Assembly (NCBI GenBank): GCA_037447605.1
Contig: CM074811.1
Location: 186,001 to 250,000, forward strand
Origin: Zygnema circumcarinatum SAG 698-1b
Lineage: Eukaryota > Plantae > Zygnematophyceae
DNA: 64,000 bases
Direction of reading: 5' to 3'
The position numbers and the translations under genes were made by a program. Within the stretch, counting starts at the first letter, position 1. Each line of letters starts with the position of its first letter. Below, piece by piece: positions 21,171 through 62,390 of this stretch. Under the pieces are notes generated by a model. That model searched no databases, was not told the origin of the DNA, and saw nothing but the letters and a program-made list of their open reading frames with translations.

Positions 21171-22307
21171 CTAACCGCTGATGGTCTTGCCAGCGGCGAT
21201 ACCGGCGTCGCGGTACTTCTGGGGGAGGGGCGCCACGCCGGCGGGCTTCATGAGGTTCTGCACGGTCGCGGTCATGGTGAACTTCACCCACGCCTGCACG
21301 ATGGAGCTGATAGCGGGGTTGTTGTACGACTTGCGGGCGAACATGTAGATGATGGAGCCGATGGGGTACGTGGTGGGGCCGGGCTTGTTCAGGAGGCTCA
21401 CTCCGCTCCACACCGCGCTGTTGTACGCGGGGATGGGGTTGGGCATGAGCGCGGAGAGGTCCGTGGCGAGGTTCGTGGAGACGAACGCGCCGGCGGCGTT
21501 GTTCACAGCCACCACGGGGACGCCGTTCAGGGTGCAGAGCCCGCTCTGGAGGTACCCGATCCTGTTGGAGTCTCCCTTCAGCGCGGCAATCATGCCGCCT
21601 GACTTAAGAACGTAGGTGATCTTAGCGGACACTCCGGACTGACCGCTCCAGCTGTCGGTTGTGGTGAACGGCCAGGCAGAGACCTGGGTCTTCAGCCACT
21701 TTCCGATCACCTCGGTGGTGCCGGAGCCGTCAGAGCGGGCCACGGGCAGCACGTTTCCGGTGGCCTTGGAGACGTAGGTGGACCAGGGAATGTACGCATC
21801 GGAGGTGTAGATGTTGTACAGCTGGGAGCCGGTGAAGCGGAGGGTGGAGGAGCCCTTCTTCAGGGTGCAGAAGGAGTAGGTCGCCACGGCGAAGGGGATG
21901 GTGTACTTGCTGGTTCCACCGGCGGCGGAGTCATCGTTGGCATCGAAAGCAACATCGGAGTAGGCAACCTCGTACACCCTGTTAATGAAAGCAGTCTGGC
22001 CGGCGCCAGAGCCGACGGAGAGGTAATCTCCGATGGAGCCCTGGCCGAGGCCGGGAACGCTGGCAGCCAAGTCGGTGGCCTTCTGCACAATCTGCAGAGC
22101 GAAAAAAGGAATTGACAGAAGCGCTCAGTATAACGCGGAGACCACGTCAGCCGGGACCCAGCGATGTGGTGGAAACGGTCCCCACTGCTGCGGAAGTTCC
22201 AGACCACTCACCGGCTGGACGGAGCTGGCTCCTCCGATCTGGATGGTGCTCGCCTGGGCGGCGGCGGCGGAGAGGAGGACGACGGCAGCGAACACAAGGG
22301 CGGCCAT
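21171..22307 (-). CDS. PstS-like secreted phosphate-binding protein, copy 1 (intact, 338 aa; exons 22307-22212 and 22091-21171)
   Basis: Signal peptide MAALVFAAVVLLSAAAAQA; 120-nt GT-AG intron; PstS motifs GGASS, YLSVGSGAG, YSD, RSDGSGTT, IGYL, NAAGAFV, YPI, APLP. Confidence 0.9.
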
Positions 22308-22380
22308 TGCTTCAAAGTTTTCTGTGAGATGCTGGTTGCTTGAAGTGAGGCTTGAATTTTAATAGCTGTTGAGCGCGGTC

Positions 22381-22692
22381 TTTATAGCTCGCCACCCGCC
22401 GCCCGGCCACGGACGGACCCGCGGGCGGCTGGGGAGGGTGCCCACTGGCCGGCATCTTCTGCCCGGCGGTACGGCCCTGCCCGGCCCGCGCCAACGAGCG
22501 CCGCGGCATCTTCCGCGCCCCTCGGCGGCATCTTGCGCCGGGCGGCCAGCGCGCGGGCGGGCGGCCGCCGCCGTACGGCACGGCGCTGTTGGCGCTTCCA
22601 AGGCAAGGCTGCGGCGGGCGCTGTCGTCAAGCGCCGCCCGACCAGCGGCGGCCGCGCGTCAGCGGAGGCGCGGGATCTTCGCAGAGGCCGTA
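22381..22692 (-). promoter_or_regulatory. Promoter of PstS copy 1: TATAAA plus a cluster of AAGAT(G/C)C motifs
   Basis: TATAAA at 22386-22381 (minus); GCATCTTC, GCATCTTG and GGATCTTC motifs; near-identical to 38510-38815 in inverted orientation. Confidence 0.6.
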
Positions 22693-22865
22693 CAAATGCG
22701 TTAAATGGCGGAGGTACTGTACAGTAGGGATGGCCCGCGTTATAAAGTCCGACTACATTACTTACTTTACAACGGGTTTAAAAGTAGTAATATAGTATAA
22801 AGTAAAAGACTTTATTATATATATTATACCCACTCGTTTTGAACAATTAACGACCGAACGACCTA

Positions 22866-26510: not shown

Positions 26511-26835
26511 AACTCAAGCCTGAGTACAGACAATCAACATCTTACAGCAAAGCTGAAGCCATGGCCGCCCTTCTGTTCGTCGCTGTCGTCCTCCTCTCTG
26601 CCGCCGCCGCCCAGGCGAGCACCATCCAGATTGGCGGAGCCAGCTCCGTGAAGCTTGTGAGTGGCCTTCAACTTCCGCCGCAGTGGGGATGGTTTCCACC
26701 ACATCGCTGGGTTCCGGTTGACGTGGTCTCCGCGTTATACTGAGCGCTTCTGTCTTTTCGTGTTCGCTTTGCAGCTTATGCAGACGGCCCTCTCCGACTC
26801 TGAAGGCGTTCCCGGCCTCGGCATGGACTCCGTCG

Positions 26836-29800
26836 TGTTGTAAATTAAGGCCCGGTCCGTCTCACTCACTTCACTCACTGCCATGTTTGCAATCTGAATC
26901 AAGGAAAGCTCTCAAGTGCACACACTGAAAGATAACTGAAATCAAACGAGCAAAAACACCGTAAGGAAATGTAAGGAGAAAGCACCCGGCCTCAAAACTC
27001 CTTAATAAAGTAAAGGAAGTTACAAGCACAAGTTTCAGCCCTCAGGCTTCTACTTCAGCTCTGACTAACTCCCGACCCCCTGCTGCCCATACAGCCAGGC
27101 AACCGCACTCAGCAACACGAGCTAAGCTGCGGCTGTATTAGAATATCTATTACCTAAGCCTAACTCTACTTAAGTACTAAGCGTTGCACTACTCCTCCAC
27201 GTTCTAATGCATGCCATGTCTCGCCACCGCGCTGCACCGCACGCCGCCGCGTTCCACCGCGCACCTCCATGTCGCTGGCGACGCTCCACGTCTCCAGGTG
27301 CTCGCCTCTCTCCTCGCGGTAACTCCTCCTTAGGTCGCCATGGCCAGGAGGGGGAGTGTCCGTACAGGAAGCTCCTCCTCCGACTTGCCTTCCTTCGAGA
27401 AGCTTCCTCGACAACGCGCGCGCCACTCCAGCGTTCGTCCGTACGCACCGGACTAATGTACGGTCGACCCAAAGAAACAATAAGCAAACCTAAGGTGTTC
27501 GCGCAGCCTATCGCTGAGCGCCACGTGTCATAACTATCCTTAAGCGACTCTAAATATCTCCAGTGTCGACGCGGCCTATAGCCGCTCGCCACGTGGCCAG
27601 AGACTAATTCTGCGCGTTCCCACTACGAGACTAAGACTGTCGGTCAGTCCACATCCGGACCGAATCTCCTAAGGACCTTTGACAACTGCTAAGGACCGTA
27701 CGGTGTACAGTTCGGGGCTATACCCCTATTGTACACATCATTCCCCCTCTCGATCCTAGCCACGAAAAGGTCCGACTCCAATAAGAATACTGTTCCTCCA
27801 GACGATCTCACCGTTCGTCCCCTTGGTTAACATATCTGCCGCTTGATCTTTCGTACCGACAAATCCGACGGCCACCAGGCCATCCTCTACCTGTTTTCTG
27901 ACATAGTGATACTGCAACCGAATATGTTTCGACCTTTTATGAAACACTGGATTCTGTACCAACGCGATCGATGATTGGTTATCAGTAAAGATCTGTACCG
28001 GGATCTGAGGGCGTTCGCACTCAGCGAAGAAGTTTTGAAGCCAGATCGCCTCTTTGCTTGCGTGGCATGCCGCAATGTACTCCGCCTCCGTACTGGACAG
28101 CGCAATCGTCGCTTGCAGATTCGAGCTCCACGTCAGCGCACCTCCTGCGTTGACAAAAGCGTAGCCAGATGTAGATTTGGACGTATCCACGTCGCCGCCC
28201 CAATCCGAGTCGGTGTATCCGTACACCCGTGTCTCAACTCCACCGTCGAAGTTAATGCCGAACTGAGAAGTTCCCTTCACATAGCGAAATATTCGCTTAA
28301 CTGCTTCCCAATGTTCCGGGCCAGGATTCTGCATGTACCGTGAGACCGTACTGACAGCCTTAGCCAAGTCAGGTCGTGTTCCAACCTGTAGGTACATCAG
28401 GCTACCGATGGCTGACCTGTACGGAATTCTGTCCATCTGCCTCTTCTCTTCCTCCGTCTGAGGTGACATGTCATGGGAGAGGTGGATAGAAGGGTCCATG
28501 GGGCAGGTAACAGGATGGCAATCCTGCATGCTAAACCTGATGAGCACATCCTTGGCATATTTCTCTTGGCAAAGGAATAAGTTATTTTGACGCCCCCTCT
28601 TAAGCTGAATGCCTAATAAGTACTCAGCTTCTCCCAAGTCACTCATCTGAAATTTAGTCTTCAGAAGTTCTTTCAGACTCTGAATGCCTAAAAATAAAGC
28701 CCAGACAATAATGATCAGATCATCTACGTAGATCCCTACATACGTCAGTTCAACCCCTTCCCCCTTCTTATAAACTTAAGCATCCGTTTCAAACTTAATG
28801 AAGCCATTATCTCTCAAGAGGTTGTCAATTTTGCCATACGGTCCGTGGAGCTTTGTTTCAGCCCGTACAGGCTTTTCACAAGCACCGCATACCAAGTGTT
28901 CTTCTCCTTCATCACTTAGAATTTGGTCATGAAGATTCTTCCTCCAACTCTCCATATAAAAATCGTCTTTATGTCAATTTGGTAGACATGCATCCTTTAG
29001 AACAACTGCTGATGGATATCAAAGATCTGAGGGAGCTAAACTTGACTACCGGAGCAAAAGTTTCTGTGTAGTCAAGCCCATATTTCTGGCTAAACCCTTT
29101 TGCGTCCAGCCTAGCCTTGTATCTATCGACGCTCCCATCTGACTTCCTTTTCACTTTGAAAACCCATTTGCACCCTATAGCCTTCCTCCCCTTTGGCAAC
29201 TCTACCAGCCGCCAAGTCTTGTTCTCTTTCAAGCTACCCAACTCACTCTCAATGGCTACTCCCCATTTCTCAGCATCTGCCCCCTCTACAGCTTCAGAGA
29301 GAGTTTGGGGTTCACCGATGGTCGCCATCAAGACTTCAGCGACGCTGGCAAATTCAGCAGAGTCGGTCGGCATCCTCCATTCGCTTGCTCCATTTACCTC
29401 CCACTCGGAAGGGGGGTAGCGCCTGTTCGGTCTCCGGAGGCGAGCTCCTTCCTGCTGTACGGCCACCCTGGTTAGCGGCACTCTTGTCGTTACTGGTACA
29501 GCAGATAACAAGGGAGAAGGTACGGTAGGTCGTTTGACCGAAGGTCGGTCGAGTGACTCGAAAATGTCACTCAACGACCTCTCTCGTTGCGCCACGTCGT
29601 CGTGAACAGCTGTAAGTGTCGGTGAGTCGATCTCCGTTGATTCCAAATGATTTGAAGGTCACGCGCCAGGGCGCCATCGTAGCCATCCGATTTCAGAATG
29701 CGGTTGGTGACGGGTCTCCGCTAGCGCATCTCCGCCGTTCGGTTCGTTGTCTCGCACCACTGAATCGCCACCGTCTGATTCGTAGGAGATTTCAAATTTG

Positions 29801-32800
29801 TCGTTTTGCGAGAGTTTGACCTCCAAGTCCATTCGGATTTCAACCGGAGGATTTTCTTGGAATCTAACATCTCGACTCCTCTCTACCTGTTTGGTTAAGG
29901 GATTCCACACCCGATACGTGGGACTATCCTCATTATAGCCAATCAGGTACCCGAGAGTGGATCTACTCTCGAACTTGGAATTTCTCCTGGGCTTCAGTAC
30001 GGTCATGAAGAACCGTGCTCCCCATACTCTGAAGTAAGCCACTGAAGGCTTCTTTCCGCTCCACACCTCCTCCGGCACCCTGTCCTGAAGTGCTCTCGTC
30101 GGGCACCTGTTTCTGATGTGAGCTGCTGCCATTACTGCCTCACCCCAGAAGGTTAAGGGAAGTGGGGACTCACTCATCATGGTCCTCACCATGTCCCCAA
30201 GCGTGCGGTTCACTCTCTCCGCAGCTCCATTGCTTTGAGGTGAGTAAGGGGCTGAAAACTGATGCTTCATGCCAAGAGCTTCGAAGTGATCTTTGAAATT
30301 CTTGGAGATGTACTCCCCTCCATTGTCTGAACAAAGGGACTTCACCTTCAGCCCGGTTTCTCTCTCCACTTCCACCTGCAACCTTTTAAAGACATCAAAG
30401 GTTTCAGCTTTACTATCAATCACCCTCACCCAGATCTTCCTAGAGCAGTCGTCTAGAAAGGTGATGAAGTATTTTGCCCCTCCTCGGCTGGTGGGAGTGA
30501 TGGGTCCACATAAATCCGTGTGGACCAACTCGAGCCGTTCCTTGGCTCGGCTGTCCTCTGAATTCCGGTGGCTGAACGGCAGTCGGTGGGCTTTGCTAGC
30601 GAGGCAGTCCTCACAAAAGCCAGCCTCTGATTCCTTCATCTGCACGTCAATTCCTCTCACAAGGCGTTTGTCCACCAGTTTCTTCAGACTTTGGTAGCCG
30701 AGATGGCCCATTCGGCGATGCCACAACTTGGCCGCCGGATTTTCAGAGAGAGCATTGACTTGGTGTGAGAGGACCCCTCCTCCCTTTAAAAGGTAAAGGC
30801 CGTTCTTTTCTGTGCCTCTCAAAACAACCTTCCCGGTTAATTTTTCCACCACCTTGCACTCCTCTCCATTAAACCAAGAAACATATCCTCTTTTGCCTAG
30901 CTAGCTCAGGGAAATGAAGTTGCTTTGAAGACCAGGGGTAAGGAGAACGTTGCCCATGGTAACTGTTCTTCCCTTCTCTCCTCCATGAGTGATTAATCTC
31001 ACGGATCCTCCTTGAGTAACTTTCACTCCTTCTCCGGTCGCTACGTAAACGGATCTTGCCGCTTCCAACGTTCGCAACTCTGCAAAAGAAGACTTTTGGG
31101 AACACATGTGTTTAGAAGCTCCAGAATCAATTATCCAAGGCAGTTCGGGTTTCCCGGACCTGCATGGACCTTCTCGAATCCCACCCACGAACTCCTTGTT
31201 ATGCGCTTCTGAGCTCATCATCAAGTTTGTCTCGCTTGCTCCATCTTGACAAGCCACAGACTTGTGGCCCTTCTTGCCGCACTTAAAACACGTTCCACCG
31301 AAAGTAGGCTTCTTCTTCTTGCTCGGATCTCCACCTGAAGACTCCCCTTTCTTCTCGGGTCGTCCCTTGGTCTGGTAGCAGTCCGTTGACAGATGTCCAC
31401 GCTTGCCACACGTGTAGCATGTAGGGGGAGGACGATCTCCTCCATCTTTCTTCCCTTTGCTCTTGCCGAATTTCGCAGCCTGGAATGAGAGGACACTATC
31501 TGCAGTTCCTTTCCCACCCTCTAGCAACATTTCTGCCTCTCTGATTCTCCCTTTGATTTGCACCATAGACATGGGCAAGCTAGCAAGGTGAGTTCTTAAT
31601 GACTCTACAACTCTTTCATATTTGCTTGGAAGTCCTATTAAGAAGTGATGAATCTCGCTAGGCAAGGTTATAGGCTGCTTAGCAGCTATGCATTTCTGCA
31701 TCAAGCTATCATATTTTACAAAGTACTGAGTGAGTGTGTCCCCCTTCTCCATTTTGCATGCTCCTAATTCTGCATACAAATTTACAGGTAAACCACTTTC
31801 TGCTACTTCATAAACTGACTGCAAACTGCTCCACATAGTTGCTGCACATTTTATATCTAGCAGCATGGTGCCAGGACCATTTCCTACTGACATAGCAATA
31901 TAGCCTGCTGTTTTCTTATTGTTCACTTGCCATAGGTCGAAGACTTTCGTTTCCGCTGCGTTGGTTGGAGGAGGTGGTTCCGGCGAACTCCCATCGACAT
32001 ACTTGAACAGGTTCTTTGTCTCCAGCATGTAAGTCATCCGCCACCTCCAATGTCTGTACTGGGTCCCTTCGAAGGTCGGGACCTTGAACCTGGGTTCCTC
32101 CTCGGAGGTTGCTCTGATACCACTGTTGTAAATTAAGGCCCGGTCCGTCTCACTCACTTCACTCACTGCCATGTTTGCAATCTGAATCAAGGAAAGCTCT
32201 CAAGTGCACACACTGAAAGATAACTGAAATCAAACGAGCAAAAAACACCGTAAGGAAATGTAAGGAGAAAGCACCCGGCCTCAAAACTCCTTAATAAAGT
32301 AAAGGAAGTTACAAGCACAAGTTTCAGCCCTCAGGCTTCTACTTCAGCTCTGACTAACTCCCGACCCCCTGCTGCCCATACAGCCAGGCAACCGCACTTA
32401 GCAACACGAGCTAAGCTGCGGCTGTATTAGAATATCTATTACCTAAGCCTAACTCTACTTAAGTACTAAGCGTTGCACTACTCCTCCACGTTCTAATGCA
32501 TGCCATGTCTCGCCACCGCGCTGCACCGCACGCCGCCGCGTTCCACCGCGCACCTCCATGTCGCTGGCGACGCTCCACGTCTCCAGGCGCTCGCCTCTCT
32601 CCTCGCGGTAACTCCTCCTTAGGTCGCCATGGCCAGGAGGGGGAGTGTCCGTACAGAAAGCTCCTCCTCCGACTTGCCTTCCTTCGAGAAGCTTCCTCGA
32701 CAACGCGCGCGCCACTCCAGCGTTCGTCCGTACGCACCGGACTAATGTACGGTCGACCCAAAGAAACAATAAGCAAACCTAAGGTGTTCGCGCAGCCTAT

Positions 32801-33029
32801 CGCTGAGCGCCACGTGTCATAACTATCCTTAAGCGACTCTAAATATCTCCAGTGTCGACGCGGCCTATAGCCGCTCGCCACGTGGCCAGAGACTAATTCT
32901 GCGCGTTCCCACTACGAGACTAAGACTGTCGGTCAGTCCACATCCGGACCGAATCTCCTAAGGACCTTTGACAACGGCTAAGGACCGTACGGTGTACAGT
33001 TCGGGGCTATACCCCTATTGTACACATCA
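26836..33029 (-). mobile_element. Ty1/copia LTR retrotransposon family A, full length, internally disabled
   Basis: LTRs 26836-27740 and 32124-33029 (~905 bp, about 5 differences seen); TSD CGTCG; PBS TGGTATCAGAGC at 32122-32111; PPT next to 27741. Confidence 0.95.
27756..32172 (-). pseudogene. Copia-A gag-pol polyprotein split by stops and frameshifts
   Basis: Gag with two CCHC knuckles, protease 'WIIDSGAS', GAG-pre-integrase 'LWHRRMGH', integrase 'SDNGGEY..NGAAER', RT 'YKARL.AKGFSQ' and RNase H 'YTDSDWGGD..IFTDNQS', in copia order across ORFs 30901-32190, 29659-30852, 28969-29646 and 27756-28646. Confidence 0.92.
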
Positions 33030-47927: not shown

Positions 47928-48365
47928 TGTGACAGAAGAGAACACATTCAAGCTTGACATACAAAACACATGTTCTCACAAGATCAACACACAACTCATA
48001 AACACTTCTTTATTTCATATGAGGCCTCATTACAGATCACTTCATCCTCTCTTCTCTCTTCCTGTTCTCTCTTCACTGTGTTCTACATCTGCGCAGCGCT
48101 TCTTTTCTACCCAATGTCTAAGCTTCCAGAATTCTCCTTTCTGAATCCTCCTTCTTGAGCACCATACATTTGCGACGCTACGCCAGACGCTTCTCCTCCG
48201 CCTGACACTTCTCTTCCTGCACAGACCTTCCTGAACTCTCTCACATGCGCAGTCTCTCTTTCGCCCGTACATATTCCGTACAGTATCCGTACACCTGTCC
48301 GTACATATATCCGTACAGCTTCCGTACAACAGTCCGTACAACCCGCAGCATCATCATCTATCACA
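47928..48365 (-). mobile_element. Hybrid solo LTR, copia family B (non-matching flanks)
   Basis: Reverse complement of the family B LTR; flanks are CATTT (47923-47927) and GGGAT (48366-48370). Confidence 0.92.
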
Positions 48366-49374: not shown

Positions 49375-49850
49375 AGCAGGCAACGTCGTTAGAACATATT
49401 CGCCAAATTCTTTAAGTTTGTATTTTTGCACAAATAGGTGAACATGGCATAGGGTGGGAAAAGAAATGCCAGATCCGCTGCAATTTTGATAGATGATATG
49501 CAGTACGGTAATCAAATGTGGCTGGCAAACATTTGTGGACCTTTCTTCACTAAGAACACATTTTTGTTGGTCTTCCTCATTTATTGGTGTATTGGTACTT
49601 TCCACTGGTTTTGGTTAACTTCGACGCCTATCTCGTATGCCGCCTTCTAACTCATTCTAAGCAAAAAATATCCTTTACGAGAGGAGTAGCAGTACGCAGC
49701 TGCCGTGTACCCCGTTTCTGCTCTTGCTCTTCATTTGGATCATTTCTTCCTTTGTTCACGACATCCTGTGGTGGGCGCGGTTTCTGACGTTTGCCTATGT
49801 ACAGATACATATCCAATTCCTCTGAGTCTCCTCAAGAAAGAAGGGCAATA

Positions 49851-50670
49851 TAGGGAGGGAGTGGAGGGAGGGAGAGGGAGGTGAGGGAGGGAGGGAGGGA
49901 GGGAGGAGGGGGGGGAGGGAGGGGAGGGAGGGAGAGGGAGGGAGGAGGGAGGGAGGGAGGGAGGGAGGAGGGAGAGGGAGGGAGGGAGGGAGGGAGGGAG
50001 GGAGGGAGGGAGGGAGGAGGAGGGAGGGAGTGGGAGGAGGGAGGGAGGGAGGGAGGGAGGAGGGAGGAGGAGGAGAGGGGGAGGAGAGGGAGGGAGGGAG
50101 GAGGGAGGGAGGGAGGAGGGAGGGAGGAGGGAGGGAGGGAGGGAGGGAGGAGGGAGGGAGGGAGGAGGGAGGGAGGGAGGGAGGGAGGAGGGAGGAGGAG
50201 GAGGGAGGGAGGGAGGGAGGGAGTGGAGGGAGGGAGGGCGGAGGGAGGGAGGGAGGGAGGGAGGGAGGGAGGGAGGAGGGAGGGAGGAGGAGGAGGAGGA
50301 GGGAGGGAGGGAGGGGAGGGAGGGAGGGAGGGAGGGAGGGAGGGAGGGGAGGGAGGGAGGGAGGGAGGGAGGGAGGAGGGAGGGAGGAGGGAGGAGGGAG
50401 GGAGGAGGGAGTGGGAGGGAGGAGGGAGGGAGGGAGGGAGGGAGGGAGGGAGGGAGGGAGGGAGGGAGGGAGGGAGGGAGGGAGGGAGGGGAGGGAGGAG
50501 GGAGGAGTGGAGGGAGGAGGGAGGGAGGGAGGGAGGGAGGGAGGGAGGGAGGAGAGAGGGAGGGAGGGAGGAGAGAGGGAGTGGAGGGAGGGAGGGAGGG
50601 AGGAGTGGAGGGAGGGAGGGAGGGAGGGAGGGAGGAGGGAGGGAGGGAGGGAGGGAGGGAGGTGGGAGAG
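49851..50670. repeat. (GGAG)n polypurine microsatellite, ~0.8 kb
   Basis: Near-pure G/A run; the equivalent position in the preceding unit is an N gap (46493-46502). Confidence 0.85.
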
Positions 50671-52048
50671 AGGGAGAACATTCAAGAGTCGATATTCTAT
50701 GCGATGCATGCAGGCGGTGGATTACGAATTTGGCACGGCCTTGTCACTCAAGTTGAAACTTAAATGCATGAAACGACGACGCCTGGTTGAGCGAAACACT
50801 TTTCCAGTCGTTGGAGAAACCCTGAAAGTAATTCCTACATTTGTTTATTGCAGGACAGTCAGCTTAAAGGCTTTTTTGTACTTTTATTTTCACGAACTGT
50901 ATGGTATTGGAAACTCCGAGTGTCAAAATACTGTGCCCAGCCCTCTCTATGCTAACAATAACTGAACAACTCATCTGTAATGTTCATAAAATTCTGAAAG
51001 TCGTCGAGGGAATCGTTTTTTGTAGCATTCTTGTTGCGGCTTTATATAGGCGATGGGGCTGTTTAGTGCTTGTGAATGTGCTCGTTAATTTTCGGTTTCG
51101 AAGCAGTTTGAGAACTTGGTCAGCTTTAAATCATAAGTTGACCATTTGGGATTGCGGATGATTCTCTTTCCTGGCACTGAAGCCATATGTTCAATGCTAT
51201 CATGATTAATTTTTTAACTTTTCCCGACTGAGATTGAGAAATCTTCAGACGACATTCATTACAAAGAGATACACTTGCGTGTCCTCATTTTCCTTTTCAC
51301 CCGTGGGCATTGGCCGCGTGGTGGATGTTCCTATCTATGTGATGCGAATAGGGCCCATAAATGCATGACTAGCCACCATGTCACGTGTTTGCATTCATTT
51401 AGTGTTTTGTGAAAATCTTGGCAGCGGTTGTTTCAGGATGTTGGGCGCATGGATTTGAGATTCATGTAGATCAGGCTTTGGCAATTCAACGTTACGAGTT
51501 CGAAATTTCAGGGTCTCACAAGATAGCGATAATGGGTGTGGGGTTAGTGGAGTGGGGAGGGGCCAAGGGGTAAAAGAAGAGGACGAGTTGGAAAGTTCAA
51601 GACAGGGCGGGAGAAGTTCGGACACAGGGTGGGAGTGGAGGGAGATACAGAATAAAAAAATTCAATGAAAAACCGAACAGAGATAGCACTGGTGAGGGGC
51701 GCCAATTAAGGAAAATATAAGGAAGAAGAAAACCAAACAATTATAAATAACTATTAAAAAGAGCGGAATTTACCCTCCCTCCCTCCCTGCATTGCATAGT
51801 GAAGAAATGATCCAAACAAAGAAGCCGCAGCAGTAGTAATAAGAGCAGGGGTACACAAGCAGCTGCATACTGCTGCCATTCTTCTAAATGAAATTTTTGA
51901 CTCAGAAAGAGATGGGAAGAGGCATACAAGATAGGCGTCGAAGTTAACCAAAACCAGTGGAAAGTACCAATACACCAATAAATGAGGAAGACCAACAAAA
52001 ATGTGTTCTTAGTGAAGAAAGGTCCACAAATGTTTGCCAGCCACATTT

Positions 52049-52518
52049 TGTGACAGAAGAGAACACATTCAAGCTTGACATACAAAACACATGTTCTCAC
52101 AAGATCAACACACAACTCATAAACACTTCTTTATTTCATATGAGGCCTCATTACAGATCACTTCATCCTCTCTTCTCTCTTCCTGTTCTCTCTTCACTGT
52201 GTTCTACATCTGCGCAGCGCTTCTTTTCTACCCAATGTCTAAGCTTCCAGAATTCTCCTTTCTGAATCCTCCTTCTTGAGCACCATACATTTGCGACGCT
52301 TCGCCAGACGCTTCTCCTCCGCCTGACACTTCTCTTCCTGCACAGACCTTCCTGAACTCTCTCACATGCGCAGTCTCTCTTTCGCCCGTACATATTCCGT
52401 ACAGTATCCGTACACCTGTCCGTACATATATCCGTACAGCTTCCGTACAACAGTCCGTACAACCCGCAGCATCATCATCATCACAATTCCCCCTCTTGAT
52501 GCAAGGGTTGATCAACTC
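52049..52518 (-). mobile_element. 3' LTR plus PPT stub of a copia family B element
   Basis: LTR 52049-52485; 33 nt of PPT-adjacent internal sequence (52486-52518) fused to PstS exon 2; flank CATTT at 52044-52048. Confidence 0.92.
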
Positions 52519-53352
52519 GCCGGCCAGACTGCTTTCATTAACAGGGTGTACGAGGTCGCCTACTCCGATGTTGCTTTCGATGCCAACGATGACTCCGCCG
52601 CCGGCGGAACCAGCAAGTACACCATCCCCTTCGCCGTGGCGACCTACTCCTTCTGCACCATGAAGAAGGGCTCTTCCACCCTCCGCTTCACCGGCTCCCA
52701 GCTGTACAACATCTACACCTCCGACTCCTACATTCCCTGGTCCACCTACGTCGCCAAGGCCACCGGAAACGTGCTGCCCGTGGCCCGCTCTGACGGCTCC
52801 GGCACCACCGAGGTGATCGGAAAGTGGCTGAAGACCCAGGTCTCTGCCTGGCCGTTCACCACAACCGACAGCTGGAACGGTCAGTCCGGAGTGTCCGCTA
52901 AGATCACCTACGTTCTGAAGTCGGGCGGCATGATTGCCGCGCTGCAAGGGGACTCCAACAGGATCGGGTACCTCCAGAGCGGGCTCTGCACCCTGAACGG
53001 CGTCCCCGTGGTGGCTGTGAACAACGCCGCCGGCGCGTTCGTCTCCACGAACCTCGCCACGGACCTCTCCGCGCTCATGCCCAACCCCATCCCCGCGTAC
53101 AACAGCGCGGTGTGGAGCGGAGTGAGCCTCCTGAACAAGCCCGGCCCCACCACGTACCCCATCGGCTCCATCATCTACATGTTCGCCCGCAAGTCGTACA
53201 ACAACCCCGCCATCAGCTCCATCGTGCAGGCGTGGGTGAAGTTCACCATGACCGCGACCGTGCAGAACCTCATGAAGCCCGCCGGCGTGGCGCCCCTCCC
53301 CCAGAAGTACCGCGACGCCGGTATCGCCGCGGGCAAGACCATCAGCGGTTAG
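52519..53352 (+). pseudogene. PstS-like copy 7: 5'-truncated exon 2
   Basis: Runs from 'AGQTAFINRV' to 'KTISG*'; no signal peptide. Confidence 0.85.
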
Positions 53353-53496
53353 AGCAGGCAACGTCGTTAGAACATATTCGCCAAATTCTTTAAGTTTGTA
53401 TTTTTGCACAAATAGGTGAACATGGCATAGGGTGGGAAAAGAAATGCCAGATCCGCTGCAATTTTGATAGATGATATGCAGTACGGTAATCAAATG

Positions 53497-56400
53497 TGTG
53501 ATGATGATGATGCTACGGGTTGTACGGACTGTTATACGGAAGCTGTACGGATATATGTACGGACAGGTGTACGGATACTGTACGGAATATGTACGGTCGA
53601 AAGAGAGACTGCGCATGTGAGAGAGTTCAGGAAGGTCTGTGCAGGAAGAGAAGTGTCAGGCGGAGGAGAAGCGTCTGGCGATGCGTCGCAAATGTATGGT
53701 GCTCAAGAAGGAGGATTCAGAAAGGAGAATTCTGGAAGCTTAGACATTGGGTAGAAAAGAAGCGCTGCGCAGATGTAGAACACAGTGAAGAGAGAACAGG
53801 AAGAGAGAAGAGAGGATGAAGTGATCTGTAATGAGGCCTCATATGAAATAAAGAAGTGTTTATGAGTTGTGTGTTGATCTTGTGAGAACATGTGTTTTGT
53901 ATGTCAAGCTTGAATGTGTTCTCTTCTGTCACAATGTGGTATCAGAGCTGAGTGAGAGAAAGCTGGTTGATAATTTATTGAGAGAGCAAGTGAGTAAGCA
54001 AGTGAGTGATTCTGAGTGAGATCGAAAATGAGTAAGCGGAGTGATGAAGGGAAAATATTCTTCGATGGAACTAACTATGCAGCATGGGAGATATTCGCGA
54101 AGATCAAGCTGCAGAAGAAAGGATGCTGGAAAATCGTGGAAGGTACATCTGCTAAACCAGCGGCGGCAGGACCAGAGTTGGAGAAATGGCAGGAATTAGA
54201 CGATGAGGCAAAATATCAGATTGCTAGCTTAGTAGATAAGAAGCATCTTATTCTGCTAGGGGGCAAGGATACTGCGAAGGAGATGTGGGATAAGTTAAAG
54301 GAGATTTATTTGAAGAAGTCTATGGCTGTGAGAAATTCCCTCTGGACAGAATTGACGACCTTAAGTCTATCAAGGAGAGAGTCAATAGATGAGTTTATTT
54401 TAAGATTTGAAGTTCTGGTAAGACAGTATGAGGATGTAGGGGGAACTATCTCTGAGGAACAACAGGTCCATACGATCTTACGGTGTTGTGAAGAGAGAGC
54501 CTCCAGAGATGTCGGGAACATAAAAACTCAACAGTTGAGCGATGTAGAGTCAGTGAAAGCTATTTTAAGGGCAGCAGAATCTGAGCAGAACGATAAGCAG
54601 AGGTTTCAGAAGTTCATAGGTCATAGGCCTCAGACTAGTGAGGCCTTCCACAGTCAAAGCGGAGATGAGGATGGAGGAGAACAGGTGGAAGCCTACGCAG
54701 CCAACTACAGAGGCAGAGGACGTGGAGCAAGAGGGGGTGCCTTCCGTGGAGGTCCATCGTTTGGACGAGGACGCACAGGTCAGGCCCAGGCCCAGCAGGC
54801 AGCATGTTTCAATTGTGGAAAACCTGGACATCTTGCCAAGGATTGCTGGAGCAGTTCAAGGAGTTCTGGAGCAGGAAATGGTGCAGCTACCGGAAGAGGC
54901 GTTTGGAGAGGCGATAGTGGACAGAATGAAGACACAAGAGGAGAAGGATGTTTTGTGTGTGGAAAGCCAGGTCATTTTGCTCGGGATTGCTTTCATAAAC
55001 CGCAAGGTAGAGGAAGAGGCGGCTATGGTAGAAGAGGCGGCATTAGAGGACTTGCAGCTTCAGTGAGAAATCTTCAAGGAGGTGCAGAGGAAGATGAGGA
55101 GTCAGCTTATCGTTTGGAGGAGAAGGAGCAACGTGCAGATTGGATAGTGGATAGTGGCGCATCACATCATATTTGTGCAAATAGAGACGAATTTGTGGAG
55201 ATGAGGAAATTGGCAGTTCCAAAGATCCTTCGGACAGCCAATGGAGGAGAGGAGATCGTGGATGAAGTCGGGACAGTGAAGCTGAATTTGATGATGCGAC
55301 CACAACAAGAGGAAGTACTCGTTTCAGAGGTCATGTATGCTCCAAGCCTTGAAAAGAACCTAATGTCAGTGAGGCAGCTTGCTAGAAATGGCATGAATGT
55401 TAATTTCTTTGGAGATAGATGCATAGTGAGAATGCCAAATGGGCACTTGGCTTTGGAGGCATATGATGATGGGAATCTCTACAGAGTTAGATGTGCAAGA
55501 GGCAAGAAAGGAAGGAATTTTATAGAGTCACATGTGTTGAGAGCATACGCTGCAGATGCTGATTTATGGCACAGGAGGTTAGGCCATCTCAGTTGGAGGT
55601 CGTTAGTAGCAATGAGTAAGAAGGAGATGGTGGCAGGATTGGAGGCTTTGAGCAGTAAGGAAATGCAGCATAGTTGTAAAGGATGTGAGGAAGGGAAACT
55701 AAAGCAGAAAGCATTAAAGCGGCTGGATGAGACCATTCGAACAAGGAAACGATTGGAGCTTGTGCACATGGATGTGTGCGCATCAGATGTAGAGAGCATT
55801 GGCGGCAATCATTATTTCCTTACTATTGTTGATGACTACAGCAGGAAAGTTTGGGTGCGGATGATCCGGCATAAGCATGAAGTCTTCAAAGCTTTTCTGG
55901 GCTGGAAAGCAATGGTGGAGAGAGAGAGTGGAGAGTTAGTGAAAAGGATAAAGACTGACAATGGGGGCGAATTCAAAAACAGGAGTTTTGAACAGATGTG
56001 TGCAGAGACAGGTATAAGGCAGGCATTCACTGCCCCTTATACACCGCAGCAAAATGGAGTTGCAGAGAGGATGAACAAGTCCCTCATGGACATTGCAAGG
56101 TGCAACCTGGTGGAGAGTAATCTTCCAGAAAACCTCTGGGCTGAAGCAGTCACTGCAGCAGCCTACATCAAGAACAGGAGCTACAACTCTTTGCTGAAGG
56201 AGCAGACTCCACAAGAAAGGTGGGCAGGTTCAAAGCCCAATATTTCTCATCTTAGAGTGTGGGGGAGTAGGTGTACTGTTTGGATCCCTCAACATCAGAG
56301 AAGTTGGAAGATGGCAGCTAGAGGGAGAACAGGTTTTATGGTTGGCTATAGCCGGGACAGTTACCAGTACAGGATTTATGACCCTCAGATGCAGCAGGTT

Positions 56401-58807
56401 ATCACGAGCAGAAATGTGCAGTTCTATGAGGATGAGTATATTCAGAAGGAGGACAGGCAGCAGCCAAGGAGATTCAGTTATCAGCCCGCAGATGATAGTG
56501 ATGAGGAGGACACAGATGAGAGTGATGATGAAGAGACACCAAGGAAGTCAGCAAGGAAGGAGACAAGACCAGTGGAGACAGCGCAGGAGGAGCAGCCTCA
56601 AAGGGAGACAAGAGGAGATTCCAGCGCAACAGAATTGAGGAGATCAGAGAGACCAAAGAAGCCGGTAGTGAAGTTGACATCAGACAGAATTGGAGAACTA
56701 CATATGGCTGAGGAGAAGAAAGGAGGGAGACATAGACTTTCAATTGGGACAATTTACTGCAATCAGGTGGTAATTGGAGAACCACAGAGTTATCAAGAAG
56801 CTTTGGAAGGAGAAGATGGAGAGAAGTGGAAAGGAGCAATAGATAGTGAGTGGAACAGCTTGTTGGAGAACAAAACTTGGACTTTGGAGGAGTTGCCAGA
56901 AGGGAGGACAGCAATTGGCGCTAAATGGGTGTTCAAGAAGAAGCTGAAGGCAGATGGCAGCATTGAAAGGTACAAGGCTAGATTAGTTGCAAAAGGATAT
57001 AGTCAGATTGAAGGGATTGATTTCACAGAGACTTTTGCTCCAGTTGTGAAGATAGAGAGCTTGAGGAGCATGTTAGCTATTGCAGCTGAGAAAGGATGGC
57101 ACATTCATCAGATGGATGTGAAGACAGCCTTTCTGAATGGAGAATTAGAGGAGGAGATATTCATGGAGCAGCCAGAAGGAAAGGTGGAGCCAGGAAAGGA
57201 AAATTTAGTTTGCAGGTTGAAGAAATCCATCTATGGACTGAAGCAAGCTCCAAGGCTTTGGTATGAGAAGCTTCATCAAGTGTTGTTGAAGGAGCAATGT
57301 GAGAGGTTTGATTCAGATCATTCAGTTTACAGAAGAGGAGTTGGTGAGAAAATGGTTGTTATTGGTGTGTATGTGGATGACTTGGTCATTGCTGGACCAA
57401 GCTTGCAAGAAATCAAGAAGCTGAAGAAGACTTTGATGAGACACTTTAAAATGTCTGACTTAGGGGAAGCTGAATACATTCTCGGTATCCAGATTCAGAG
57501 GGGGACAGATGGATCTATATTTATGAATCAGAGGAAGTACATGGGGGAGATCTTGGAGAAATTCGAAATGAAGGATGCTAAACCAGTGAGTACCCCATTA
57601 GATGTGAGTGTGAAGTTGACAAGTGAAATGTGTCCCAGGACTGAGAGAGAAAGGGAGTACATGAAGGGGGTCCCTTATAGATCAGCAGTAGGAAGTCTGA
57701 TGTATCTCATGACTTCTACCAGACCAGATCTTGCAGCGGCTGTTGGAATGCTGAGCAGGTTTCTGAATGACCCAAGAAAGGCGCATTGGGAAGCAGTGAA
57801 GAGAGTCATGCGCTATGTGAAGGGGACTTTGGATACAGGATTGAAGTTCCAGAAGATTGAAGGAGAGCCAACAGTGATTGGCTATTGTGATTCAGATTGG
57901 GGAGGATGTGTTGATACAGGCAGAAGCACCAGTGGATATATCTTTGTTTGTGCAGGAGTAGCAATTTCATGGAACAGCAAACTCCAGGAGTGTGTGGCGT
58001 TGAGCAGTGCAGAAGCTGAGTACATGGCGGCGTGTCATGCAGCAAAAGAAGCTAAGTGGCTGCAGCAGTTGTTTGCAGAGTTGAAGGAACCGCAACCAAA
58101 GTTATTAATGTGGAGTGATAGTCAAAGTTGCATTGCTTTAGTTAAGAACCCAGTTTATCACAAGAGGACAAAGCATATAGATTTGAAGTATCATTTCATT
58201 CGTGAGTTAGTGACCAAGAAGGAGATTGAGCTGAAATATGTTCATACGACTGAGCAGGCAGCTGATATGATGACTAAGGCAGGGACAGGACCAATGATTG
58301 GTAGATGTTGCAGGCTTGTAGGATTGATGAGTGCTTGAGTTGTCCAACCCTTGCATCAAGAGGGGGAATTGTGATAGATGATGATGCTGCGGGTTGTACG
58401 GACTGTTGTACGGAAGCTGTACGGATATATGTACGGACAAGTGTACGGATACTGTACGGAATGTGTACGGGCGAAAGGGAGACTGCGCGTGTGAGAGAGT
58501 TCAGGAAGGTCTGTGCAGGAAGAGAAGTGTCAGGCGGAGGAGAAGCGTCTGGCGAAGCGTCGCAAATGTATGGTGCTCAGGAAGGAGGATTCAGAAAGGA
58601 GAATTCTGGAAGCTTAGACATTGGGTAGAAAAGAAGCGCTGCGCAGATGTAGAATACAGTGAAGAGAGAACAGGAAGAGAGAAGAGAGGATGAAGTGATC
58701 TGTAATGAGGCCTCATATGAAATAAAGAAGTGTTTATGAGTTGTGTGTTGATCTTGTGAGAACATGTGTTTTGTATGTCAAGCTTGAATGTGTTCTCTTC
58801 TGTCACA
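53497..58807 (+). mobile_element. Ty1/copia LTR retrotransposon family B, full length, recombinant
   Basis: LTRs 53497-53933 and 58370-58807; PBS TGGTATCAGAGC at 53937-53948; PPT AAGAGGGGGAA at 58358-58368; flanks AAATG and ATCCC do not match. Confidence 0.95.
54028..58338 (+). CDS. Intact copia gag-pol polyprotein (1436 aa)
   Basis: Single ORF with gag, two CCHC knuckles, protease 'WIVDSGASHH', integrase 'TDNGGEF..QNGVAER', RT 'YVDD' and RNase H 'YCDSDWGG..WSDSQS'. Confidence 0.95.
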   Translation: MSKRSDEGKIFFDGTNYAAWEIFAKIKLQKKGCWKIVEGTSAKPAAAGPELEKWQELDDEAKYQIASLVDKKHLILLGGKDTAKEMWDKLKEIYLKKSMAVRNSLWTELTTLSLSRRESIDEFILRFEVLVRQYEDVGGTISEEQQVHTILRCCEERASRDVGNIKTQQLSDVESVKAILRAAESEQNDKQRFQKFIGHRPQTSEAFHSQSGDEDGGEQVEAYAANYRGRGRGARGGAFRGGPSFGRGRTGQAQAQQAACFNCGKPGHLAKDCWSSSRSSGAGNGAATGRGVWRGDSGQNEDTRGEGCFVCGKPGHFARDCFHKPQGRGRGGYGRRGGIRGLAASVRNLQGGAEEDEESAYRLEEKEQRADWIVDSGASHHICANRDEFVEMRKLAVPKILRTANGGEEIVDEVGTVKLNLMMRPQQEEVLVSEVMYAPSLEKNLMSVRQLARNGMNVNFFGDRCIVRMPNGHLALEAYDDGNLYRVRCARGKKGRNFIESHVLRAYAADADLWHRRLGHLSWRSLVAMSKKEMVAGLEALSSKEMQHSCKGCEEGKLKQKALKRLDETIRTRKRLELVHMDVCASDVESIGGNHYFLTIVDDYSRKVWVRMIRHKHEVFKAFLGWKAMVERESGELVKRIKTDNGGEFKNRSFEQMCAETGIRQAFTAPYTPQQNGVAERMNKSLMDIARCNLVESNLPENLWAEAVTAAAYIKNRSYNSLLKEQTPQERWAGSKPNISHLRVWGSRCTVWIPQHQRSWKMAARGRTGFMVGYSRDSYQYRIYDPQMQQVITSRNVQFYEDEYIQKEDRQQPRRFSYQPADDSDEEDTDESDDEETPRKSARKETRPVETAQEEQPQRETRGDSSATELRRSERPKKPVVKLTSDRIGELHMAEEKKGGRHRLSIGTIYCNQVVIGEPQSYQEALEGEDGEKWKGAIDSEWNSLLENKTWTLEELPEGRTAIGAKWVFKKKLKADGSIERYKARLVAKGYSQIEGIDFTETFAPVVKIESLRSMLAIAAEKGWHIHQMDVKTAFLNGELEEEIFMEQPEGKVEPGKENLVCRLKKSIYGLKQAPRLWYEKLHQVLLKEQCERFDSDHSVYRRGVGEKMVVIGVYVDDLVIAGPSLQEIKKLKKTLMRHFKMSDLGEAEYILGIQIQRGTDGSIFMNQRKYMGEILEKFEMKDAKPVSTPLDVSVKLTSEMCPRTEREREYMKGVPYRSAVGSLMYLMTSTRPDLAAAVGMLSRFLNDPRKAHWEAVKRVMRYVKGTLDTGLKFQKIEGEPTVIGYCDSDWGGCVDTGRSTSGYIFVCAGVAISWNSKLQECVALSSAEAEYMAACHAAKEAKWLQQLFAELKEPQPKLLMWSDSQSCIALVKNPVYHKRTKHIDLKYHFIRELVTKKEIELKYVHTTEQAADMMTKAGTGPMIGRCCRLVGLMSA

Positions 58808-58937
58808 ATCCCCACAGCGACGGTACTTCCAGACCACTCACCGGCTGGACGGAGCTGGCTCCTCCGATCTGGATGGTGCTCGCCTGGGCGGCGGCGGCGG
58901 AGAGGAGGACGACGGCGGCGAACACAAGGGCGGCCAT
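58808..58937 (-). pseudogene. PstS-like copy 8: exon 1 (58937-58842) plus 5' part of intron, cut at the LTR; promoter extends to ~60100
   Basis: MAALVFAAVVLLSAAAAQASTIQIGGASSVQP|GTGAGT...GTGGGGAT joined to the LTR end. Confidence 0.88.
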
Positions 58938-60119
58938 GGCTCCTGAGTGAGTAGGCGGCAGAGGAGTGGGAGTAGTGGGAGCGGTGAGTGCTTGAGTGCT
59001 GACCACTCGGCGCTCTGCGGCCGTTTTATAGCGACCGCCGCCGCCAGCCGCCCGCCCGGCGGGGCCCGCCACCGCCGCGTACGGATTGTGATCTAGGGCT
59101 AGGGCGGGGCAGATCTAGGGCGGGGCCGCGGCCGCCAGAAGCGGCCTCGCGGCATCTTCGCTGCCCGCGCCGCGACAAAAACAAATGCTCCGCCCGCGGC
59201 CTTCGCGCCTCACGGCGGCATCTTTCGCGGGGCGGCGGGCGGCGCGCTTGGGCGAGGCGGGGCCGGCCACCGACGAAACGATTTGGACCGCATGTGACAG
59301 GAATGCGACAGACCGGAAGCCGTCGATCTCTCCCGAGACAAGGATCGGACGCTCACGATTCTCGTTTGAAACGTTTCCTGCCCGCAAAATAGTTTTTCGG
59401 GTTCCGGCCGGCAGCTGTCGTGTTCGTGCGGACCGCACGTAGAGCGGTCCGTAGCCGTACGCGCAATCGGCCACAGAGATGCGACGCCGCCCCTACGGAC
59501 AAGGAACGCCGCGGGGTCGCCGTTCGCCCGCCCGAGCTCACGTACGGTCCCGAGCGCCGCCCCGGGATGGCGCCGCGGCCAGAGCGGGCCAGGGCCAGAC
59601 CCGCCCGCGGATGGCATCTCCGCCCGCGAGATGCCGCGGAGCGGCGGAAAGATGCGGACAGCGACGGCGCGGATACGACAGGTTGCGCCGCTTAAACGCT
59701 CGCGGTCCGACACGTATCACGTTGGACCCGCCGCAACATGCGCGGCACGAGTTCAGCGTGCCCGACAGGGCCGCCAAGTGGTGTGACATCCTGTCACGGC
59801 TCGCTTGCCACGTTGCAGGGCTTCCGGATGCATGCTAGGGAGAGGGGGAGGCGGGGGCGGCGTGACACATGTCATGCGACGGGGACGGAAGGTACACTGC
59901 GGCGGAGGTCGCGGCGCGCGGGCAATGAGAGGGCGAGGGCGGGAGGGGGGGGGGCCGGAGTGAATTTGGAAATACAAAACTAAAAACCAAGCTGCTGGCA
60001 TGTTGGGTTTTGTTGTATGGAATAGGACAGTGTGAACGGATCCAATTCTTTTCTTTTTGCAGCAGATCTAGACTTGGGGTTTCTCGAGAGAGAAGGGTGA
60101 GGGGTTTCGGAAAGAAGTG

Positions 60120-60630
60120 AGGGACAAATGAGAGGGGGGAGGTGGCAGGGTTGGCGGGGGGGAGAGGTGGGAAAGAGAGCGGGATATGGGGCAAGGCTGG
60201 CGGGAGGGAGAGGTTGGAAAGAGAGAGCGGGCGGGGGGGGGGAGGGCAGGGGTGCCGGGAGGGAGAAGTGGGAAAGAGAGCGCGGGAGGGGGGGAAGGGG
60301 TGGCGGGAGGGAGAGTTTGGAAAGAGTGAGCGGGAGGGGGGACAGGGGTGGCGGGAGGGAGTGGTTGGAAAGAGAGAGCAGGAGGGGGGACAGGGGTGGC
60401 GGGAGGGAGTGGTTGGAAAGAGATTGCGAGAGGGGGGGCAGGGGTGCAAAGAGGGAGAGGTTGGAAAGAGAGAGAGGGAGGGGGGGCAGGGGTGGCAGGA
60501 TCGAGTGGTTGGAAAGAGAGAGCGGGATGGGGGGAAGGGATGGCGGAGGAAGTGGTTGGAAAAAGAGAGCGGGAGGGAGGGCAGGGATGGTGGGAGGGAG
60601 AGGTGGGAAAGAGAGAGCGGGATCGAGTGG
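60120..60630. repeat. ~48-bp G-rich minisatellite
   Basis: GTGGCGGGAGGGAG..TTGGAAAGAG.. recurs at 60300, 60348 and 60396. Confidence 0.8.
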
Positions 60631-61334
60631 GAGTTGCAAAATCAAGTACGTGATGATTGGTAACTGAACAAAGACAGCAATGCTGAGGGCCGCCAAACAC
60701 ATCAAACACTTGCCTGCACTAGGGAAAATACAAAGAGCACAGAACAGAAGTTGAGCAGAAGAGCACAGAACTAATCATCTACATATATATACATTTTGAA
60801 GTCAGTAATAAACTCTGAAAAACGTTCTCCCTCCCTTGCTTCACTCTCGCCCTTCATTGCCACTCTCTCTGGAGAGACACAGGAAATGCATCTGTACATA
60901 TGAAACATCATCGACAAGCCTACCACTCCGCATATTTTGAAATAAACATGCAAGTAAACCTAATGACAAAGAGGCAGCAGCAGGTTCAAGATAAGGAGTA
61001 CAGAGCAGCTGCGTACGTGCTACCATTCGTCTGAATGAAATTTTTGATTCAGATAAAGGTGGGAAGAGGCATACAAGATAGGCGTCGAAGTTAACCAAAA
61101 CCAGTGGAAAGTACCAATACACCAATAAATGAGGAAGACCAACAAAAATGTGTTCTTAGTGAAGAAAGGTCCACAAATGTTTGCCAGCCACATTTGATTA
61201 CCGTACTGCATATCATCTATCAAAATTGCAGCGGATCTGGCATTTCTTTTCCCACCCTATGCCATGTTCACCTATTTTTGCAAAAATACAAACTTAAAGA
61301 ATTTGGCGAATATGTTCTAACGACGTTGCCTGCT

Positions 61335-62390
61335 CTAACCGCTGATGGTCTTGCCTCAAGGGCGACACCGGGCGCCGCGTACTTGGGAGGGGCGCCATGC
61401 CGCGGGCTTCATGAGGTTCTGCACGGTCGCGGTCATGGTGAACTTCACCCACGCCTGCACGATGGAGCTGATGGCGGGGTTGTTGTACGACTTGCGGGCG
61501 AACATGTAGATGATGGAGCCGATGGGGTACGTGGTGGGGCCGGGCTTGTTCAGGAGGCTCACTCCGCTCCACACCGCGCTGTCGTACGTAGGGATGGGGT
61601 TGGGCATGAGCGCGGAGAGGTCCGTGGCGAGGTTCGTGGAGACGAACGCGCGGGCGGCGTTGTTCACAGCCACCACGGGGACGCCGTTCAGGGTGCGGAG
61701 CCCGCTCTGGAGGTACCCGATCCTGTTGGAGTCCCCTTGCAGCGCGGCAATCATGCCGCCTGACTTAAGGACGTAGGTGATCTTAGAAGACACTCCGGAT
61801 TGGCCGTTCCAGCTGTCGGTTGTGGTGAACGGCCAGGAAGCGACCTGAGTCTTCTGCCACTTTCCGATCACCTCGGTGGTGCCGGAGCCGTCAGAGCGGG
61901 CCACGGGCAGCACGTTTCCGGTGGCCTTGGCGACGTAGGTGGACCAGGGAATGTAGGAGTCGGAGGTGTAGATGTTGTACAGCTGGGAGCCGGTGAAGCG
62001 GAGGGTGGAAGAGCCCTTCTTCATGGTGCAGAAGGAGTNNNNNNNNNNGCGACCTCGTACACCCTGTTAATGAAAGCAGTCTGGCCGGCGCCGGAGCCGA
62101 CGGAGAGGTAATCTCCGATGGAGCCCTGGCCGAGGCCGGCAATGTTTGCAGCCAAGTCGGTGGCCTTCTGCACAATCTGCAGAGAGAACACGAATTGACA
62201 GAAACGCTCAGTATAACGCGGAGACCACGTCAACCGGAACCCAGCGATGTGGTGGAAATAATCCCCACCGCGGCGGTACTTCCAGACCACTCACCGGCTG
62301 GACGGAGCTGGCTCCTCGGATCTGGATGGTGCTCGCCTGGGCGGCGGCGGCGGAGAGGAGGATGACGGTGGTGAACACAAGGGCGGCCAT
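61335..62390 (-). pseudogene. PstS-like copy 9 (exons 62390-62295, 62176-61335); C-terminal indels and N gap; possibly a pseudogene
   Basis: Signal peptide and intron present; GGAS changed to RGAS; deletions near 61350-61400 disrupt the C-terminus (could be sequencing error). Confidence 0.75.

Follow-up and report, generated by a model that had tools for sequence, protein, structure and literature searches.

The 64,000-nucleotide stretch analyzed here (positions 186,001 to 250,000 of contig CM074811.1 of the zygnematophyte alga Zygnema circumcarinatum SAG 698-1b; hereafter, the window) carries, between 21 and 62 kb, an array of genes for a PstS-type phosphate-binding protein. PstS is part of a prokaryotic ATP-binding cassette (ABC) importer, and to our knowledge no textbook account of eukaryotic phosphate uptake includes a binding-protein step. 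We find that the PstS-like gene is a real, transcribed, and spliced nuclear gene, and sequence comparison places it in a family of stand-alone PstS proteins that is old among algae. In the reading that we prefer, with a probability of roughly 55%, its product would be secreted to the wall or mucilage, where this basic protein, working without an ABC importer, would trap phosphate and buffer it for carriers or endocytosis.

Gene structure, splicing, and the encoded protein

Exon-by-exon mapping gave one gene model for all copies: a 96-nt exon 1 (32 codons), a phase 0 GT-AG intron of 118 to 120 nt, and a 921-nt exon 2, with a full-length product of 338 amino acids. Only two copies are both complete and free of assembly gaps. 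Copy A (21171 to 22307, minus strand) has exon 1 at 22307 to 22212, a 120-nt intron at 22211 to 22092, and exon 2 at 22091 to 21171 (306 codons plus stop). Copy E (44876 to 46010, plus strand) has exon 1 at 44876 to 44971, a 118-nt intron, and exon 2 at 45090 to 46010. The G+C content at third codon positions (GC3) is 0.88 to 0.90 in the PstS-like copies (0.88 in A) versus 0.58 to 0.60 in two host exons. A preliminary description of this DNA, made from its letters, had proposed a 338-amino-acid gene with one GT-AG intron and C/G-biased third positions, and copy A is such a gene. Exon 2 of E is 97.6% identical to that of A; the two copies differ by 13 synonymous and 9 nonsynonymous changes, and the ratio of nonsynonymous to synonymous rates (dN/dS), calculated from these 22 differences only, is 0.22. 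Judged by these substitutions, A and E are under purifying selection.

The stretch is present in 20 sequencing runs from nine studies of one organism. Contigs in three runs, each from a different study, skip exactly positions 22092 to 22211 (joint 22091/22212, GT..AG, minus strand), while a DNA run keeps the 120-nt intron of copy A, so the check for splicing suggested in the preliminary description came out positive. The three runs are not recorded as RNA, yet two of them also splice the last intron of the neighboring inositol-polyphosphate-kinase (IPK) gene. The spliced contig of run X13 carries E-type alleles at 20 of 20 listed exon 2 sites and those of runs X2 and X11 are A/D-like (copy D is described below), which means that both subtypes are transcribed. 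Contig depth relative to IPK varies widely between runs and is a poor measure. Across 22212 to 22693, the spliced contigs look mosaic: that of X13 joins an A-type 5′ end to an E-type exon 2, and that of X2 combines D-type far-upstream alleles with A-type proximal alleles. Such contigs could stem from gene conversion, from differences between strains, from copies missing in the assembly, or from chimeras in the assembly graph.

All database searches and folding used exon 2, and the structural model is consequently without the first strand, which carries the T10-equivalent residue. A profile hidden Markov model search, suggested earlier as a check, matched exon 2 to Pfam PF12849 (PBP_like_2) at 56 to 61 bits against a gathering score of 27 (E value of ~1e-15) and to TIGR00975 with an E value of 4e-24, the latter at 85 bits and so, for exon 2 only, below the curated cutoff of 205. 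A match to TcdB_toxin_midN inside the PstS domain (16 to 18 bits against a cutoff of 24.8) was dismissed as noise. A profile of the algal family matched Escherichia coli PstS with an E value of 1e-52 and the ligand residues in register: S28/S29, S60, D78, R151, D153, S155, G156, and T157 align to E. coli T10/F11, S38, D56, R135, D137, S139, G140, and T141, respectively. Every phosphate residue of E. coli PstS singled out in the preliminary description therefore has an aligned counterpart. Copies A and E keep the complete D-type ligand set, including the selectivity aspartate, with T10 replaced by Ser; the same residue stands there in Synechocystis PstS1, which is also of the D type and binds phosphate with nanomolar affinity (PMC13614923). 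An alignment-based AlphaFold model of exon 2 reached a predicted local distance difference test (pLDDT) score of 91, and its top Foldseek matches were all PstS, with template modeling (TM) scores of ~0.8. The input alignment contained bacterial PstS rows, and the model is not independent of these. Exon 2 is thus predicted to fold as a two-lobed (type II) binding protein of the PstS type.

The N terminus has a short hydrophobic, signal-like stretch and an A-Q-A/S site, with a predicted mature start of STIQIGGA and no Cys or lipobox. With respect to the cleavable, lipobox-free signal peptide proposed before, the hydrophobic stretch, the AQA site, and the lack of Cys all stand, and cleavage itself is a reading from hydropathy and by eye. 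The window protein has no membrane helix after the signal-like N terminus and no lipid anchor, exon 2 has no N-glycosylation sequon, and the isoelectric point (pI) is ~9.3. The protein is probably secreted.

Relatives and origin

Word-based protein searches missed most algal relatives; an exhaustive search recovered them. Its top-ranked set consisted of proteins of 290 to 345 amino acids with 31 to 38% identity, and named relatives came from Mesotaenium, Spirogloea, Netrium, Mesostigma, Tetraselmis, and Coccomyxa, several as neighboring duplicates. Prokaryotic PstS matches were 24 to 32% identical, and the algal E values were some 20 orders of magnitude better. No database protein was close to the window copies. 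A genome scan with a narrower alignment returned only bacterial PstS at 24 to 30%, most of it near a PstB-type ATPase motif, besides one viral match at 25%; the ESM Atlas gave bacterial PstS clusters only. Most family members have signal-like N termini and pI values of 9 to 11. Identity among members is 22 to 38%, changes of ligand residues are frequent (e.g., D56 to T, I, or N and T141 to A or V), and a long stem leads to the window proteins.

Phylogenetic analysis, which the preliminary description had likewise suggested, placed the window proteins inside the algal family. In a 105-row tree (LG+C20, quick search, no bootstrap), they fell within a 31-row clade with Mesotaenium and Spirogloea members, with a support of 100 in the Shimodaira-Hasegawa-like approximate likelihood ratio test (SH-aLRT). 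The sister group of that clade was a second zygnematophyte subfamily (97), and both belonged to a broader group of algal proteins with weaker support (85 to 89). A second, 41-row tree, likewise a quick one without bootstrap, again grouped the window proteins with those of Mesotaenium and Spirogloea (SH-aLRT of 98) and separated all sampled algal from all prokaryotic rows (SH-aLRT of 99). DING and diatom proteins lie outside both trees, and some row group labels were set by sequence features. When the window proteins were moved to the prokaryotic side, the log likelihood fell by 38.6 and the approximately unbiased (AU) test gave a P value of 0.069, so that this placement is not formally rejected.

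Independently of the trees, two distant relatives on genomic contigs, L091/L092 (intron of 193 nt) and L095 (59 nt), share the position of the phase 0 GT-AG intron of the window copies, eight codons past the start of the first glycine loop. These introns were inferred from GT/AG sites and reading frame, and L093 shows a matching acceptor. An intron position that the window copies have in common with L091 and L095 implies a spliced nuclear gene long before this lineage. The domain is prokaryotic elsewhere, which makes a source among prokaryotes plausible; such a source would be ancient, and these comparisons resolve no donor, cyanobacterial or other. Of the horizontally acquired, domesticated gene proposed earlier, a prokaryotic origin thus stays plausible; the algal clade and the shared intron speak against a recent or lineage-specific acquisition.

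Two loci outside the window deserve mention. The distant algal-type relative on L091 (478 to 1344 and 3443 to 4483) also adjoins a Copia integrase fragment. A bacterial-looking 119-kb contig carries a stand-alone PstS (L089:8001-9065; P0167) with no pstCAB nearby; P0167 groups with prokaryotic rows on a long branch, outside the algal family.

Algal PstS genes are already annotated in databases. Our literature search, from which subscription journals were mostly absent, found no functional study of the algal family and nothing on streptophyte PstS. A diatom PstS with a signal peptide was listed in 2011 in a passing mention (PMC3237598), comparisons of picoeukaryotes bring up PstS in passing only (PMC11409870), and the Zygnema genome supplements that were consulted contain no mention of a PstS-like family.

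The array, its promoters, and its neighbors

An open reading frame (ORF) list and a repeat scan placed near-identical coding blocks on both strands from 21 to 62 kb, among them blocks of 1 to 2 kb at 99.4 to 99.9% identity. They resolve into eight distinct copies (A to H) within 41 kb. The earlier count of at least nine does not hold, as the extra pieces belong to B, D, F, and H, each of which is in two pieces. Two or three copies are intact and at least four are broken. Local amplification, as previously proposed, is borne out, while a clean gain in dosage is not; the pattern is more like that of birth-and-death evolution where transposons insert often. Tandem and inverted duplications enlarge the array, and Copia insertions break it down.

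Copy D (38889 to 39967, plus strand) is 99% identical to A and has an assembly gap in exon 2 (39372 to 39381). The sequence on both sides of the gap is free of stops and keeps the frame of A. Copy D is probably intact. Copy H (61335 to 62390, minus strand), of the E type, has a gap in exon 2 (62039 to 62048) and five clustered indels near its 3′ end. Relative to A, 68 nt are missing at 39372 and 86 nt at 62039, not the 10 written at each, so the reading frame across the two gaps is not readable. Copy C (35892 to 36192, plus strand) comprises only the last third of exon 2 joined to an E-like upstream spacer and is, as assembled, a deletion derivative. Copy G (52518 to 53352, plus strand) is 99.9% identical to E; it has neither a promoter nor exon 1 nor the intron, and its exon 2 is short of 86 nt at the start.

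Copy B (26561 to 33895, plus strand) is a divergent paralogue, 85% identical to A in nucleotides and 77% in amino acids (dN/dS of ~0.5), with an upstream region unlike those of other copies and the phosphate loop RSDDSAST (G140A, T141S). A loop resembling it also occurs in the relative P0144. Exon 2 of B is split by a Copia long terminal repeat (LTR) retrotransposon (26836 to 33029, minus strand) with a CGTCG target-site duplication, a tRNA-Met-type primer site, and LTRs that differ at 4 of 905 positions; the element appears young by this measure. Copy B had diverged strongly before this very recent insertion and is possibly a lower-affinity or relaxed paralogue.

A second Copia family has a full-length element at 53497 to 58808 (plus strand), with an uninterrupted gag-pol ORF (1,440-amino-acid polyprotein, 54016 to 58338) and LTRs that differ at 10 of 438 positions. 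Three further LTRs of this family lie in the array: a solo LTR (37504 to 37931, plus strand), one that abuts the intron remnant of copy F at the duplicated site GGGAT (47927 to 48365, minus strand), and one with a short internal piece that runs directly into copy G (52048 to 52517, minus strand). Copy F was hit in its intron by this family, with matching GGGAT target duplication. Its 3′ piece (48366 to 49374, plus strand), the rest of the intron and exon 2, has three one-base indels with a net frameshift as assembled; its 5′ piece (58809 to 58937, minus strand), exon 1 and the first 33 nt of the intron, ends at the GGGAT site and is inverted relative to its own exon 2. The segment from 47927 to 58937 thus records an inversion after Copia insertion, with the two exons of F now 10 kb apart on opposite strands. 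A third Copia-like element (62552 to 63664, plus strand; gag ORF at 62807 to 63664; left border set from sequence) begins in the promoter of H, ~160 nt upstream of the ATG.

A 48-bp purine/pyrimidine-skewed minisatellite occurs in the spacers that precede C, E, and F (35400 to 35700, 42600 to 43700, and 60100 to 60620), and a GA-rich tract of 0.9 kb lies at 49.8 to 50.7 kb. Such tracts may promote unequal crossing-over, and several assembly gaps fall in them. Short high-copy repeats flank copy A (20347 to 20394 and 22725 to 22850), with very high contig depth in DNA and also in the spliced runs; they are possibly the ends of miniature inverted-repeat transposable elements or short interspersed nuclear elements. 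These repeats had no Rfam match, and the Rfam and tRNA scans were empty.

The promoter region of A (22308 to 22700, minus strand) has a TATAAA ~79 nt upstream of the ATG and three copies of the nonamer AAGATGCCG, and it is ~98% identical to the region upstream of D (38368 to 38888, plus strand), which holds six AAGATGCCG and seven GNATCTNC motifs. On either strand, AAGATGCCG occurs 12 times in the window, always within 600 nt upstream of A (three), D (six), E (one), or F (two), at 22450 to 22534, 38389 to 38746, 44593 to 44601, and 59150 to 59224, respectively. About 0.01 would be expected per promoter, for a motif picked after inspection and with the A and D promoters being duplicates. With a core one letter from P1BS, AAGATGCCG is a candidate noncanonical phosphate response element, which we offer as a lead only.

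The left 20 kb carries intron-rich genes for a PHD-finger protein, Mpp10, CNOT11, and IPK, in agreement with the eukaryotic neighbors reported before; the best named match of the PHD exon is a land-plant protein (43%). Six gaps interrupt the assembly. One (19844) lies between IPK and copy A; the other five are inside the array, those at 35665, 38243, and 46493 within noncoding spacers of low complexity. A series of three overlapping contigs in DNA run X1 leads from the 3′ exon of IPK into the final codons of A and is 12 letters shorter than the assembly at the gap. The spanning contig reaches just ~16 letters left of 19844 and is no formal bridge; physical linkage of IPK and copy A is likely. 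IPK, the nearest host gene (~16450 to 19100), encodes an enzyme of the pathway that makes the phosphate-signaling inositol pyrophosphates. There is no evidence that its adjacency to the array goes beyond chance, and the Coccomyxa PstS locus (L098) has other neighbors. A tblastn search of the window with ORFs downstream of ten bacterial pstS loci found no PstC, PstA, or PstB, as the preliminary description had held for a permease; the only match was to a second PstS.

Proposed function, rival explanations, and known systems

In the reading that we prefer, the signal peptide would direct the protein, which is soluble and has neither a membrane helix nor a lipid anchor, to secretion, and its basic charge would make it stick to the wall or mucilage, both anionic and rich in pectin. 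At this site, it would trap HPO4(2-) at high affinity and hold a surface pool, which plasma membrane PHT1/PTB carriers could draw on or endocytosis could take in. The gene would probably be induced by phosphate shortage. A precedent for a secreted, permease-detached phosphate scavenger is Pseudomonas Psp (PMC2225411). Several points weigh against this proposal. By our own reasoning, an unattached binder leaves the equilibrium level of free phosphate no higher; a hand-over step would thus be needed, and none was identified. A signal peptide by itself cannot tell wall from vacuole. Canonical P1BS (GNATATNC), with three matches in the window, does not occur in the proximal promoter of any copy. 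Ligand residues are altered in several family members and in copy B, so not all members need bind phosphate well.

Those alterations also bear on an unlikely alternative, that the fold now serves another task in a basic protein of the wall or mucilage: binding other anions (phosphorylated or sulfated glycans or organic phosphate esters), controlling calcium-phosphate precipitation, or withholding phosphate from epiphytic bacteria. The fast evolution of the family, its long stem and frequent ligand changes, and the loss of G140 and T141 in copy B at a dN/dS of ~0.5 would fit. Copies A and E have nevertheless retained the full D-type site on this long branch, and its retention suggests that selection was for phosphate itself. 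An extracellular phosphate sensor or soluble co-receptor that reports to a membrane partner, in the way of bacterial PstS for the Pho regulon, rather than a bulk scavenger, seems to us rather improbable. It would draw on the receptor-like layout (multiple domains and a C-terminal hydrophobic segment) of wider-family relatives in Mesostigma, Tetraselmis, and other algae and on the sensing role of PstS in bacteria (PMC11528361), but the window subfamily is single-domain and unanchored, and repeated duplication here and in Mesotaenium and Spirogloea, together with very high GC3, suits a bulk protein better.

The remaining explanations concern the DNA itself. On one view, compatible with all the others, the gene exists but assembly duplication or consensus error accounts for a large part of the array (above all F, G, and H), and the true copy number is lower; we consider it improbable. 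Five gaps in the array, the nearly identical 1- to 2-kb blocks, the clustered indels in F and H, and a summed DNA contig depth over the exon of only ~2 to 5 times the flanks (a rough figure) all point that way. Yet a single DNA run carries both A-type and E-type alleles, B is 15% diverged, and each Copia insertion is bordered by target-site duplications that match, a feature that an assembly error would not invent. Recent bacterial transfer or contamination, or a missing eukaryotic DING gene, is largely refuted and very improbable. The bacterial-type fold and the AU result would allow a transfer; the spliced transcripts, Copia insertions, and eukaryotic neighbors exclude contamination, the best prokaryotic identity is 24 to 32% against up to 38% for algae, distant relatives share the intron, and DING features are absent.

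This PstS family of streptophyte algae, old, expressed, repeatedly duplicated, and probably secreted, suggests that phosphate capture or sensing in the algae most closely related to land plants has a layer that was overlooked, and a binding assay could start from copies A and E. More tentatively, and doubtful as a whole, a wall-bound, ABC-less PstS might act as a "phosphate transferrin" that loads at nanomolar phosphate, delivers to PHT1/PTB or endocytosis, is switched on through AAGATGCCG, and is apparently absent from land plants. If so, it would constitute an undescribed extracellular phosphate capture step in algae close to land plants. The significance of the array is limited in that algal PstS genes were in databases before, most copies are broken, and no mechanism is added.

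DING proteins, defined by an N-terminal DINGGG and a size of about 40 kDa (PMC2225411), offer one comparison. Like DING (PfluDING 2Q9T/4F1U, HPBP 2V3Q) and Pseudomonas Psp, the window protein belongs to the PstS superfamily and has the same phosphate ligands; DING and Psp are secreted and untied to a permease operon, as the window protein appears to be from its sequence. It lacks the DINGGG N terminus, its mature chain is ~55 residues shorter (~319 versus 375), and it is closer to PstS both by family profile (E values of 1e-52 versus 6e-28 for DING) and by target-normalized TM score (0.77 to 0.83 versus 0.63 to 0.66). For these reasons, the window gene does not explain the missing eukaryotic DING genes, on which it had been thought to bear. 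Nuclear PstS domain proteins with signal peptides also include Coccomyxa BDA46413.1 ("phosphate-binding protein PstS"), Tetraselmis A0A061RD09, and Mesostigma Mv02212. Unlike the window protein, such other algal proteins are often multidomain and acidic, with a C-terminal hydrophobic segment and the loops GSGTTN and R..GSSST.

The bacterial and archaeal D-type PstS proteins (E. coli 1IXH, Synechocystis PstS1, cyanophage 7XG7; TIGR00975, PF12849) resemble the window protein in fold (TM of ~0.8), length, phosphate ligands including the selectivity aspartate, and an export signal. They differ in that the window genes are nuclear, contain an intron, are tandemly amplified, are 20 to 30% identical to them, and have no pstCAB in the window. 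The nearest counterparts, known as database gene models only, are Mesotaenium ME000013S00797/S00800, ME000026S04527/S04530, and ME000351S05973 and Spirogloea SM000365S13721/S13725. At ~26 to 36% identity, the window copies stand apart on their own long stem, eight in 41 kb, but these single-domain proteins of the same clade share with them a length of ~325 to 345 amino acids, a signal-like N terminus, a basic pI, the GGA[ST]S first loop, and the habit of local duplication.

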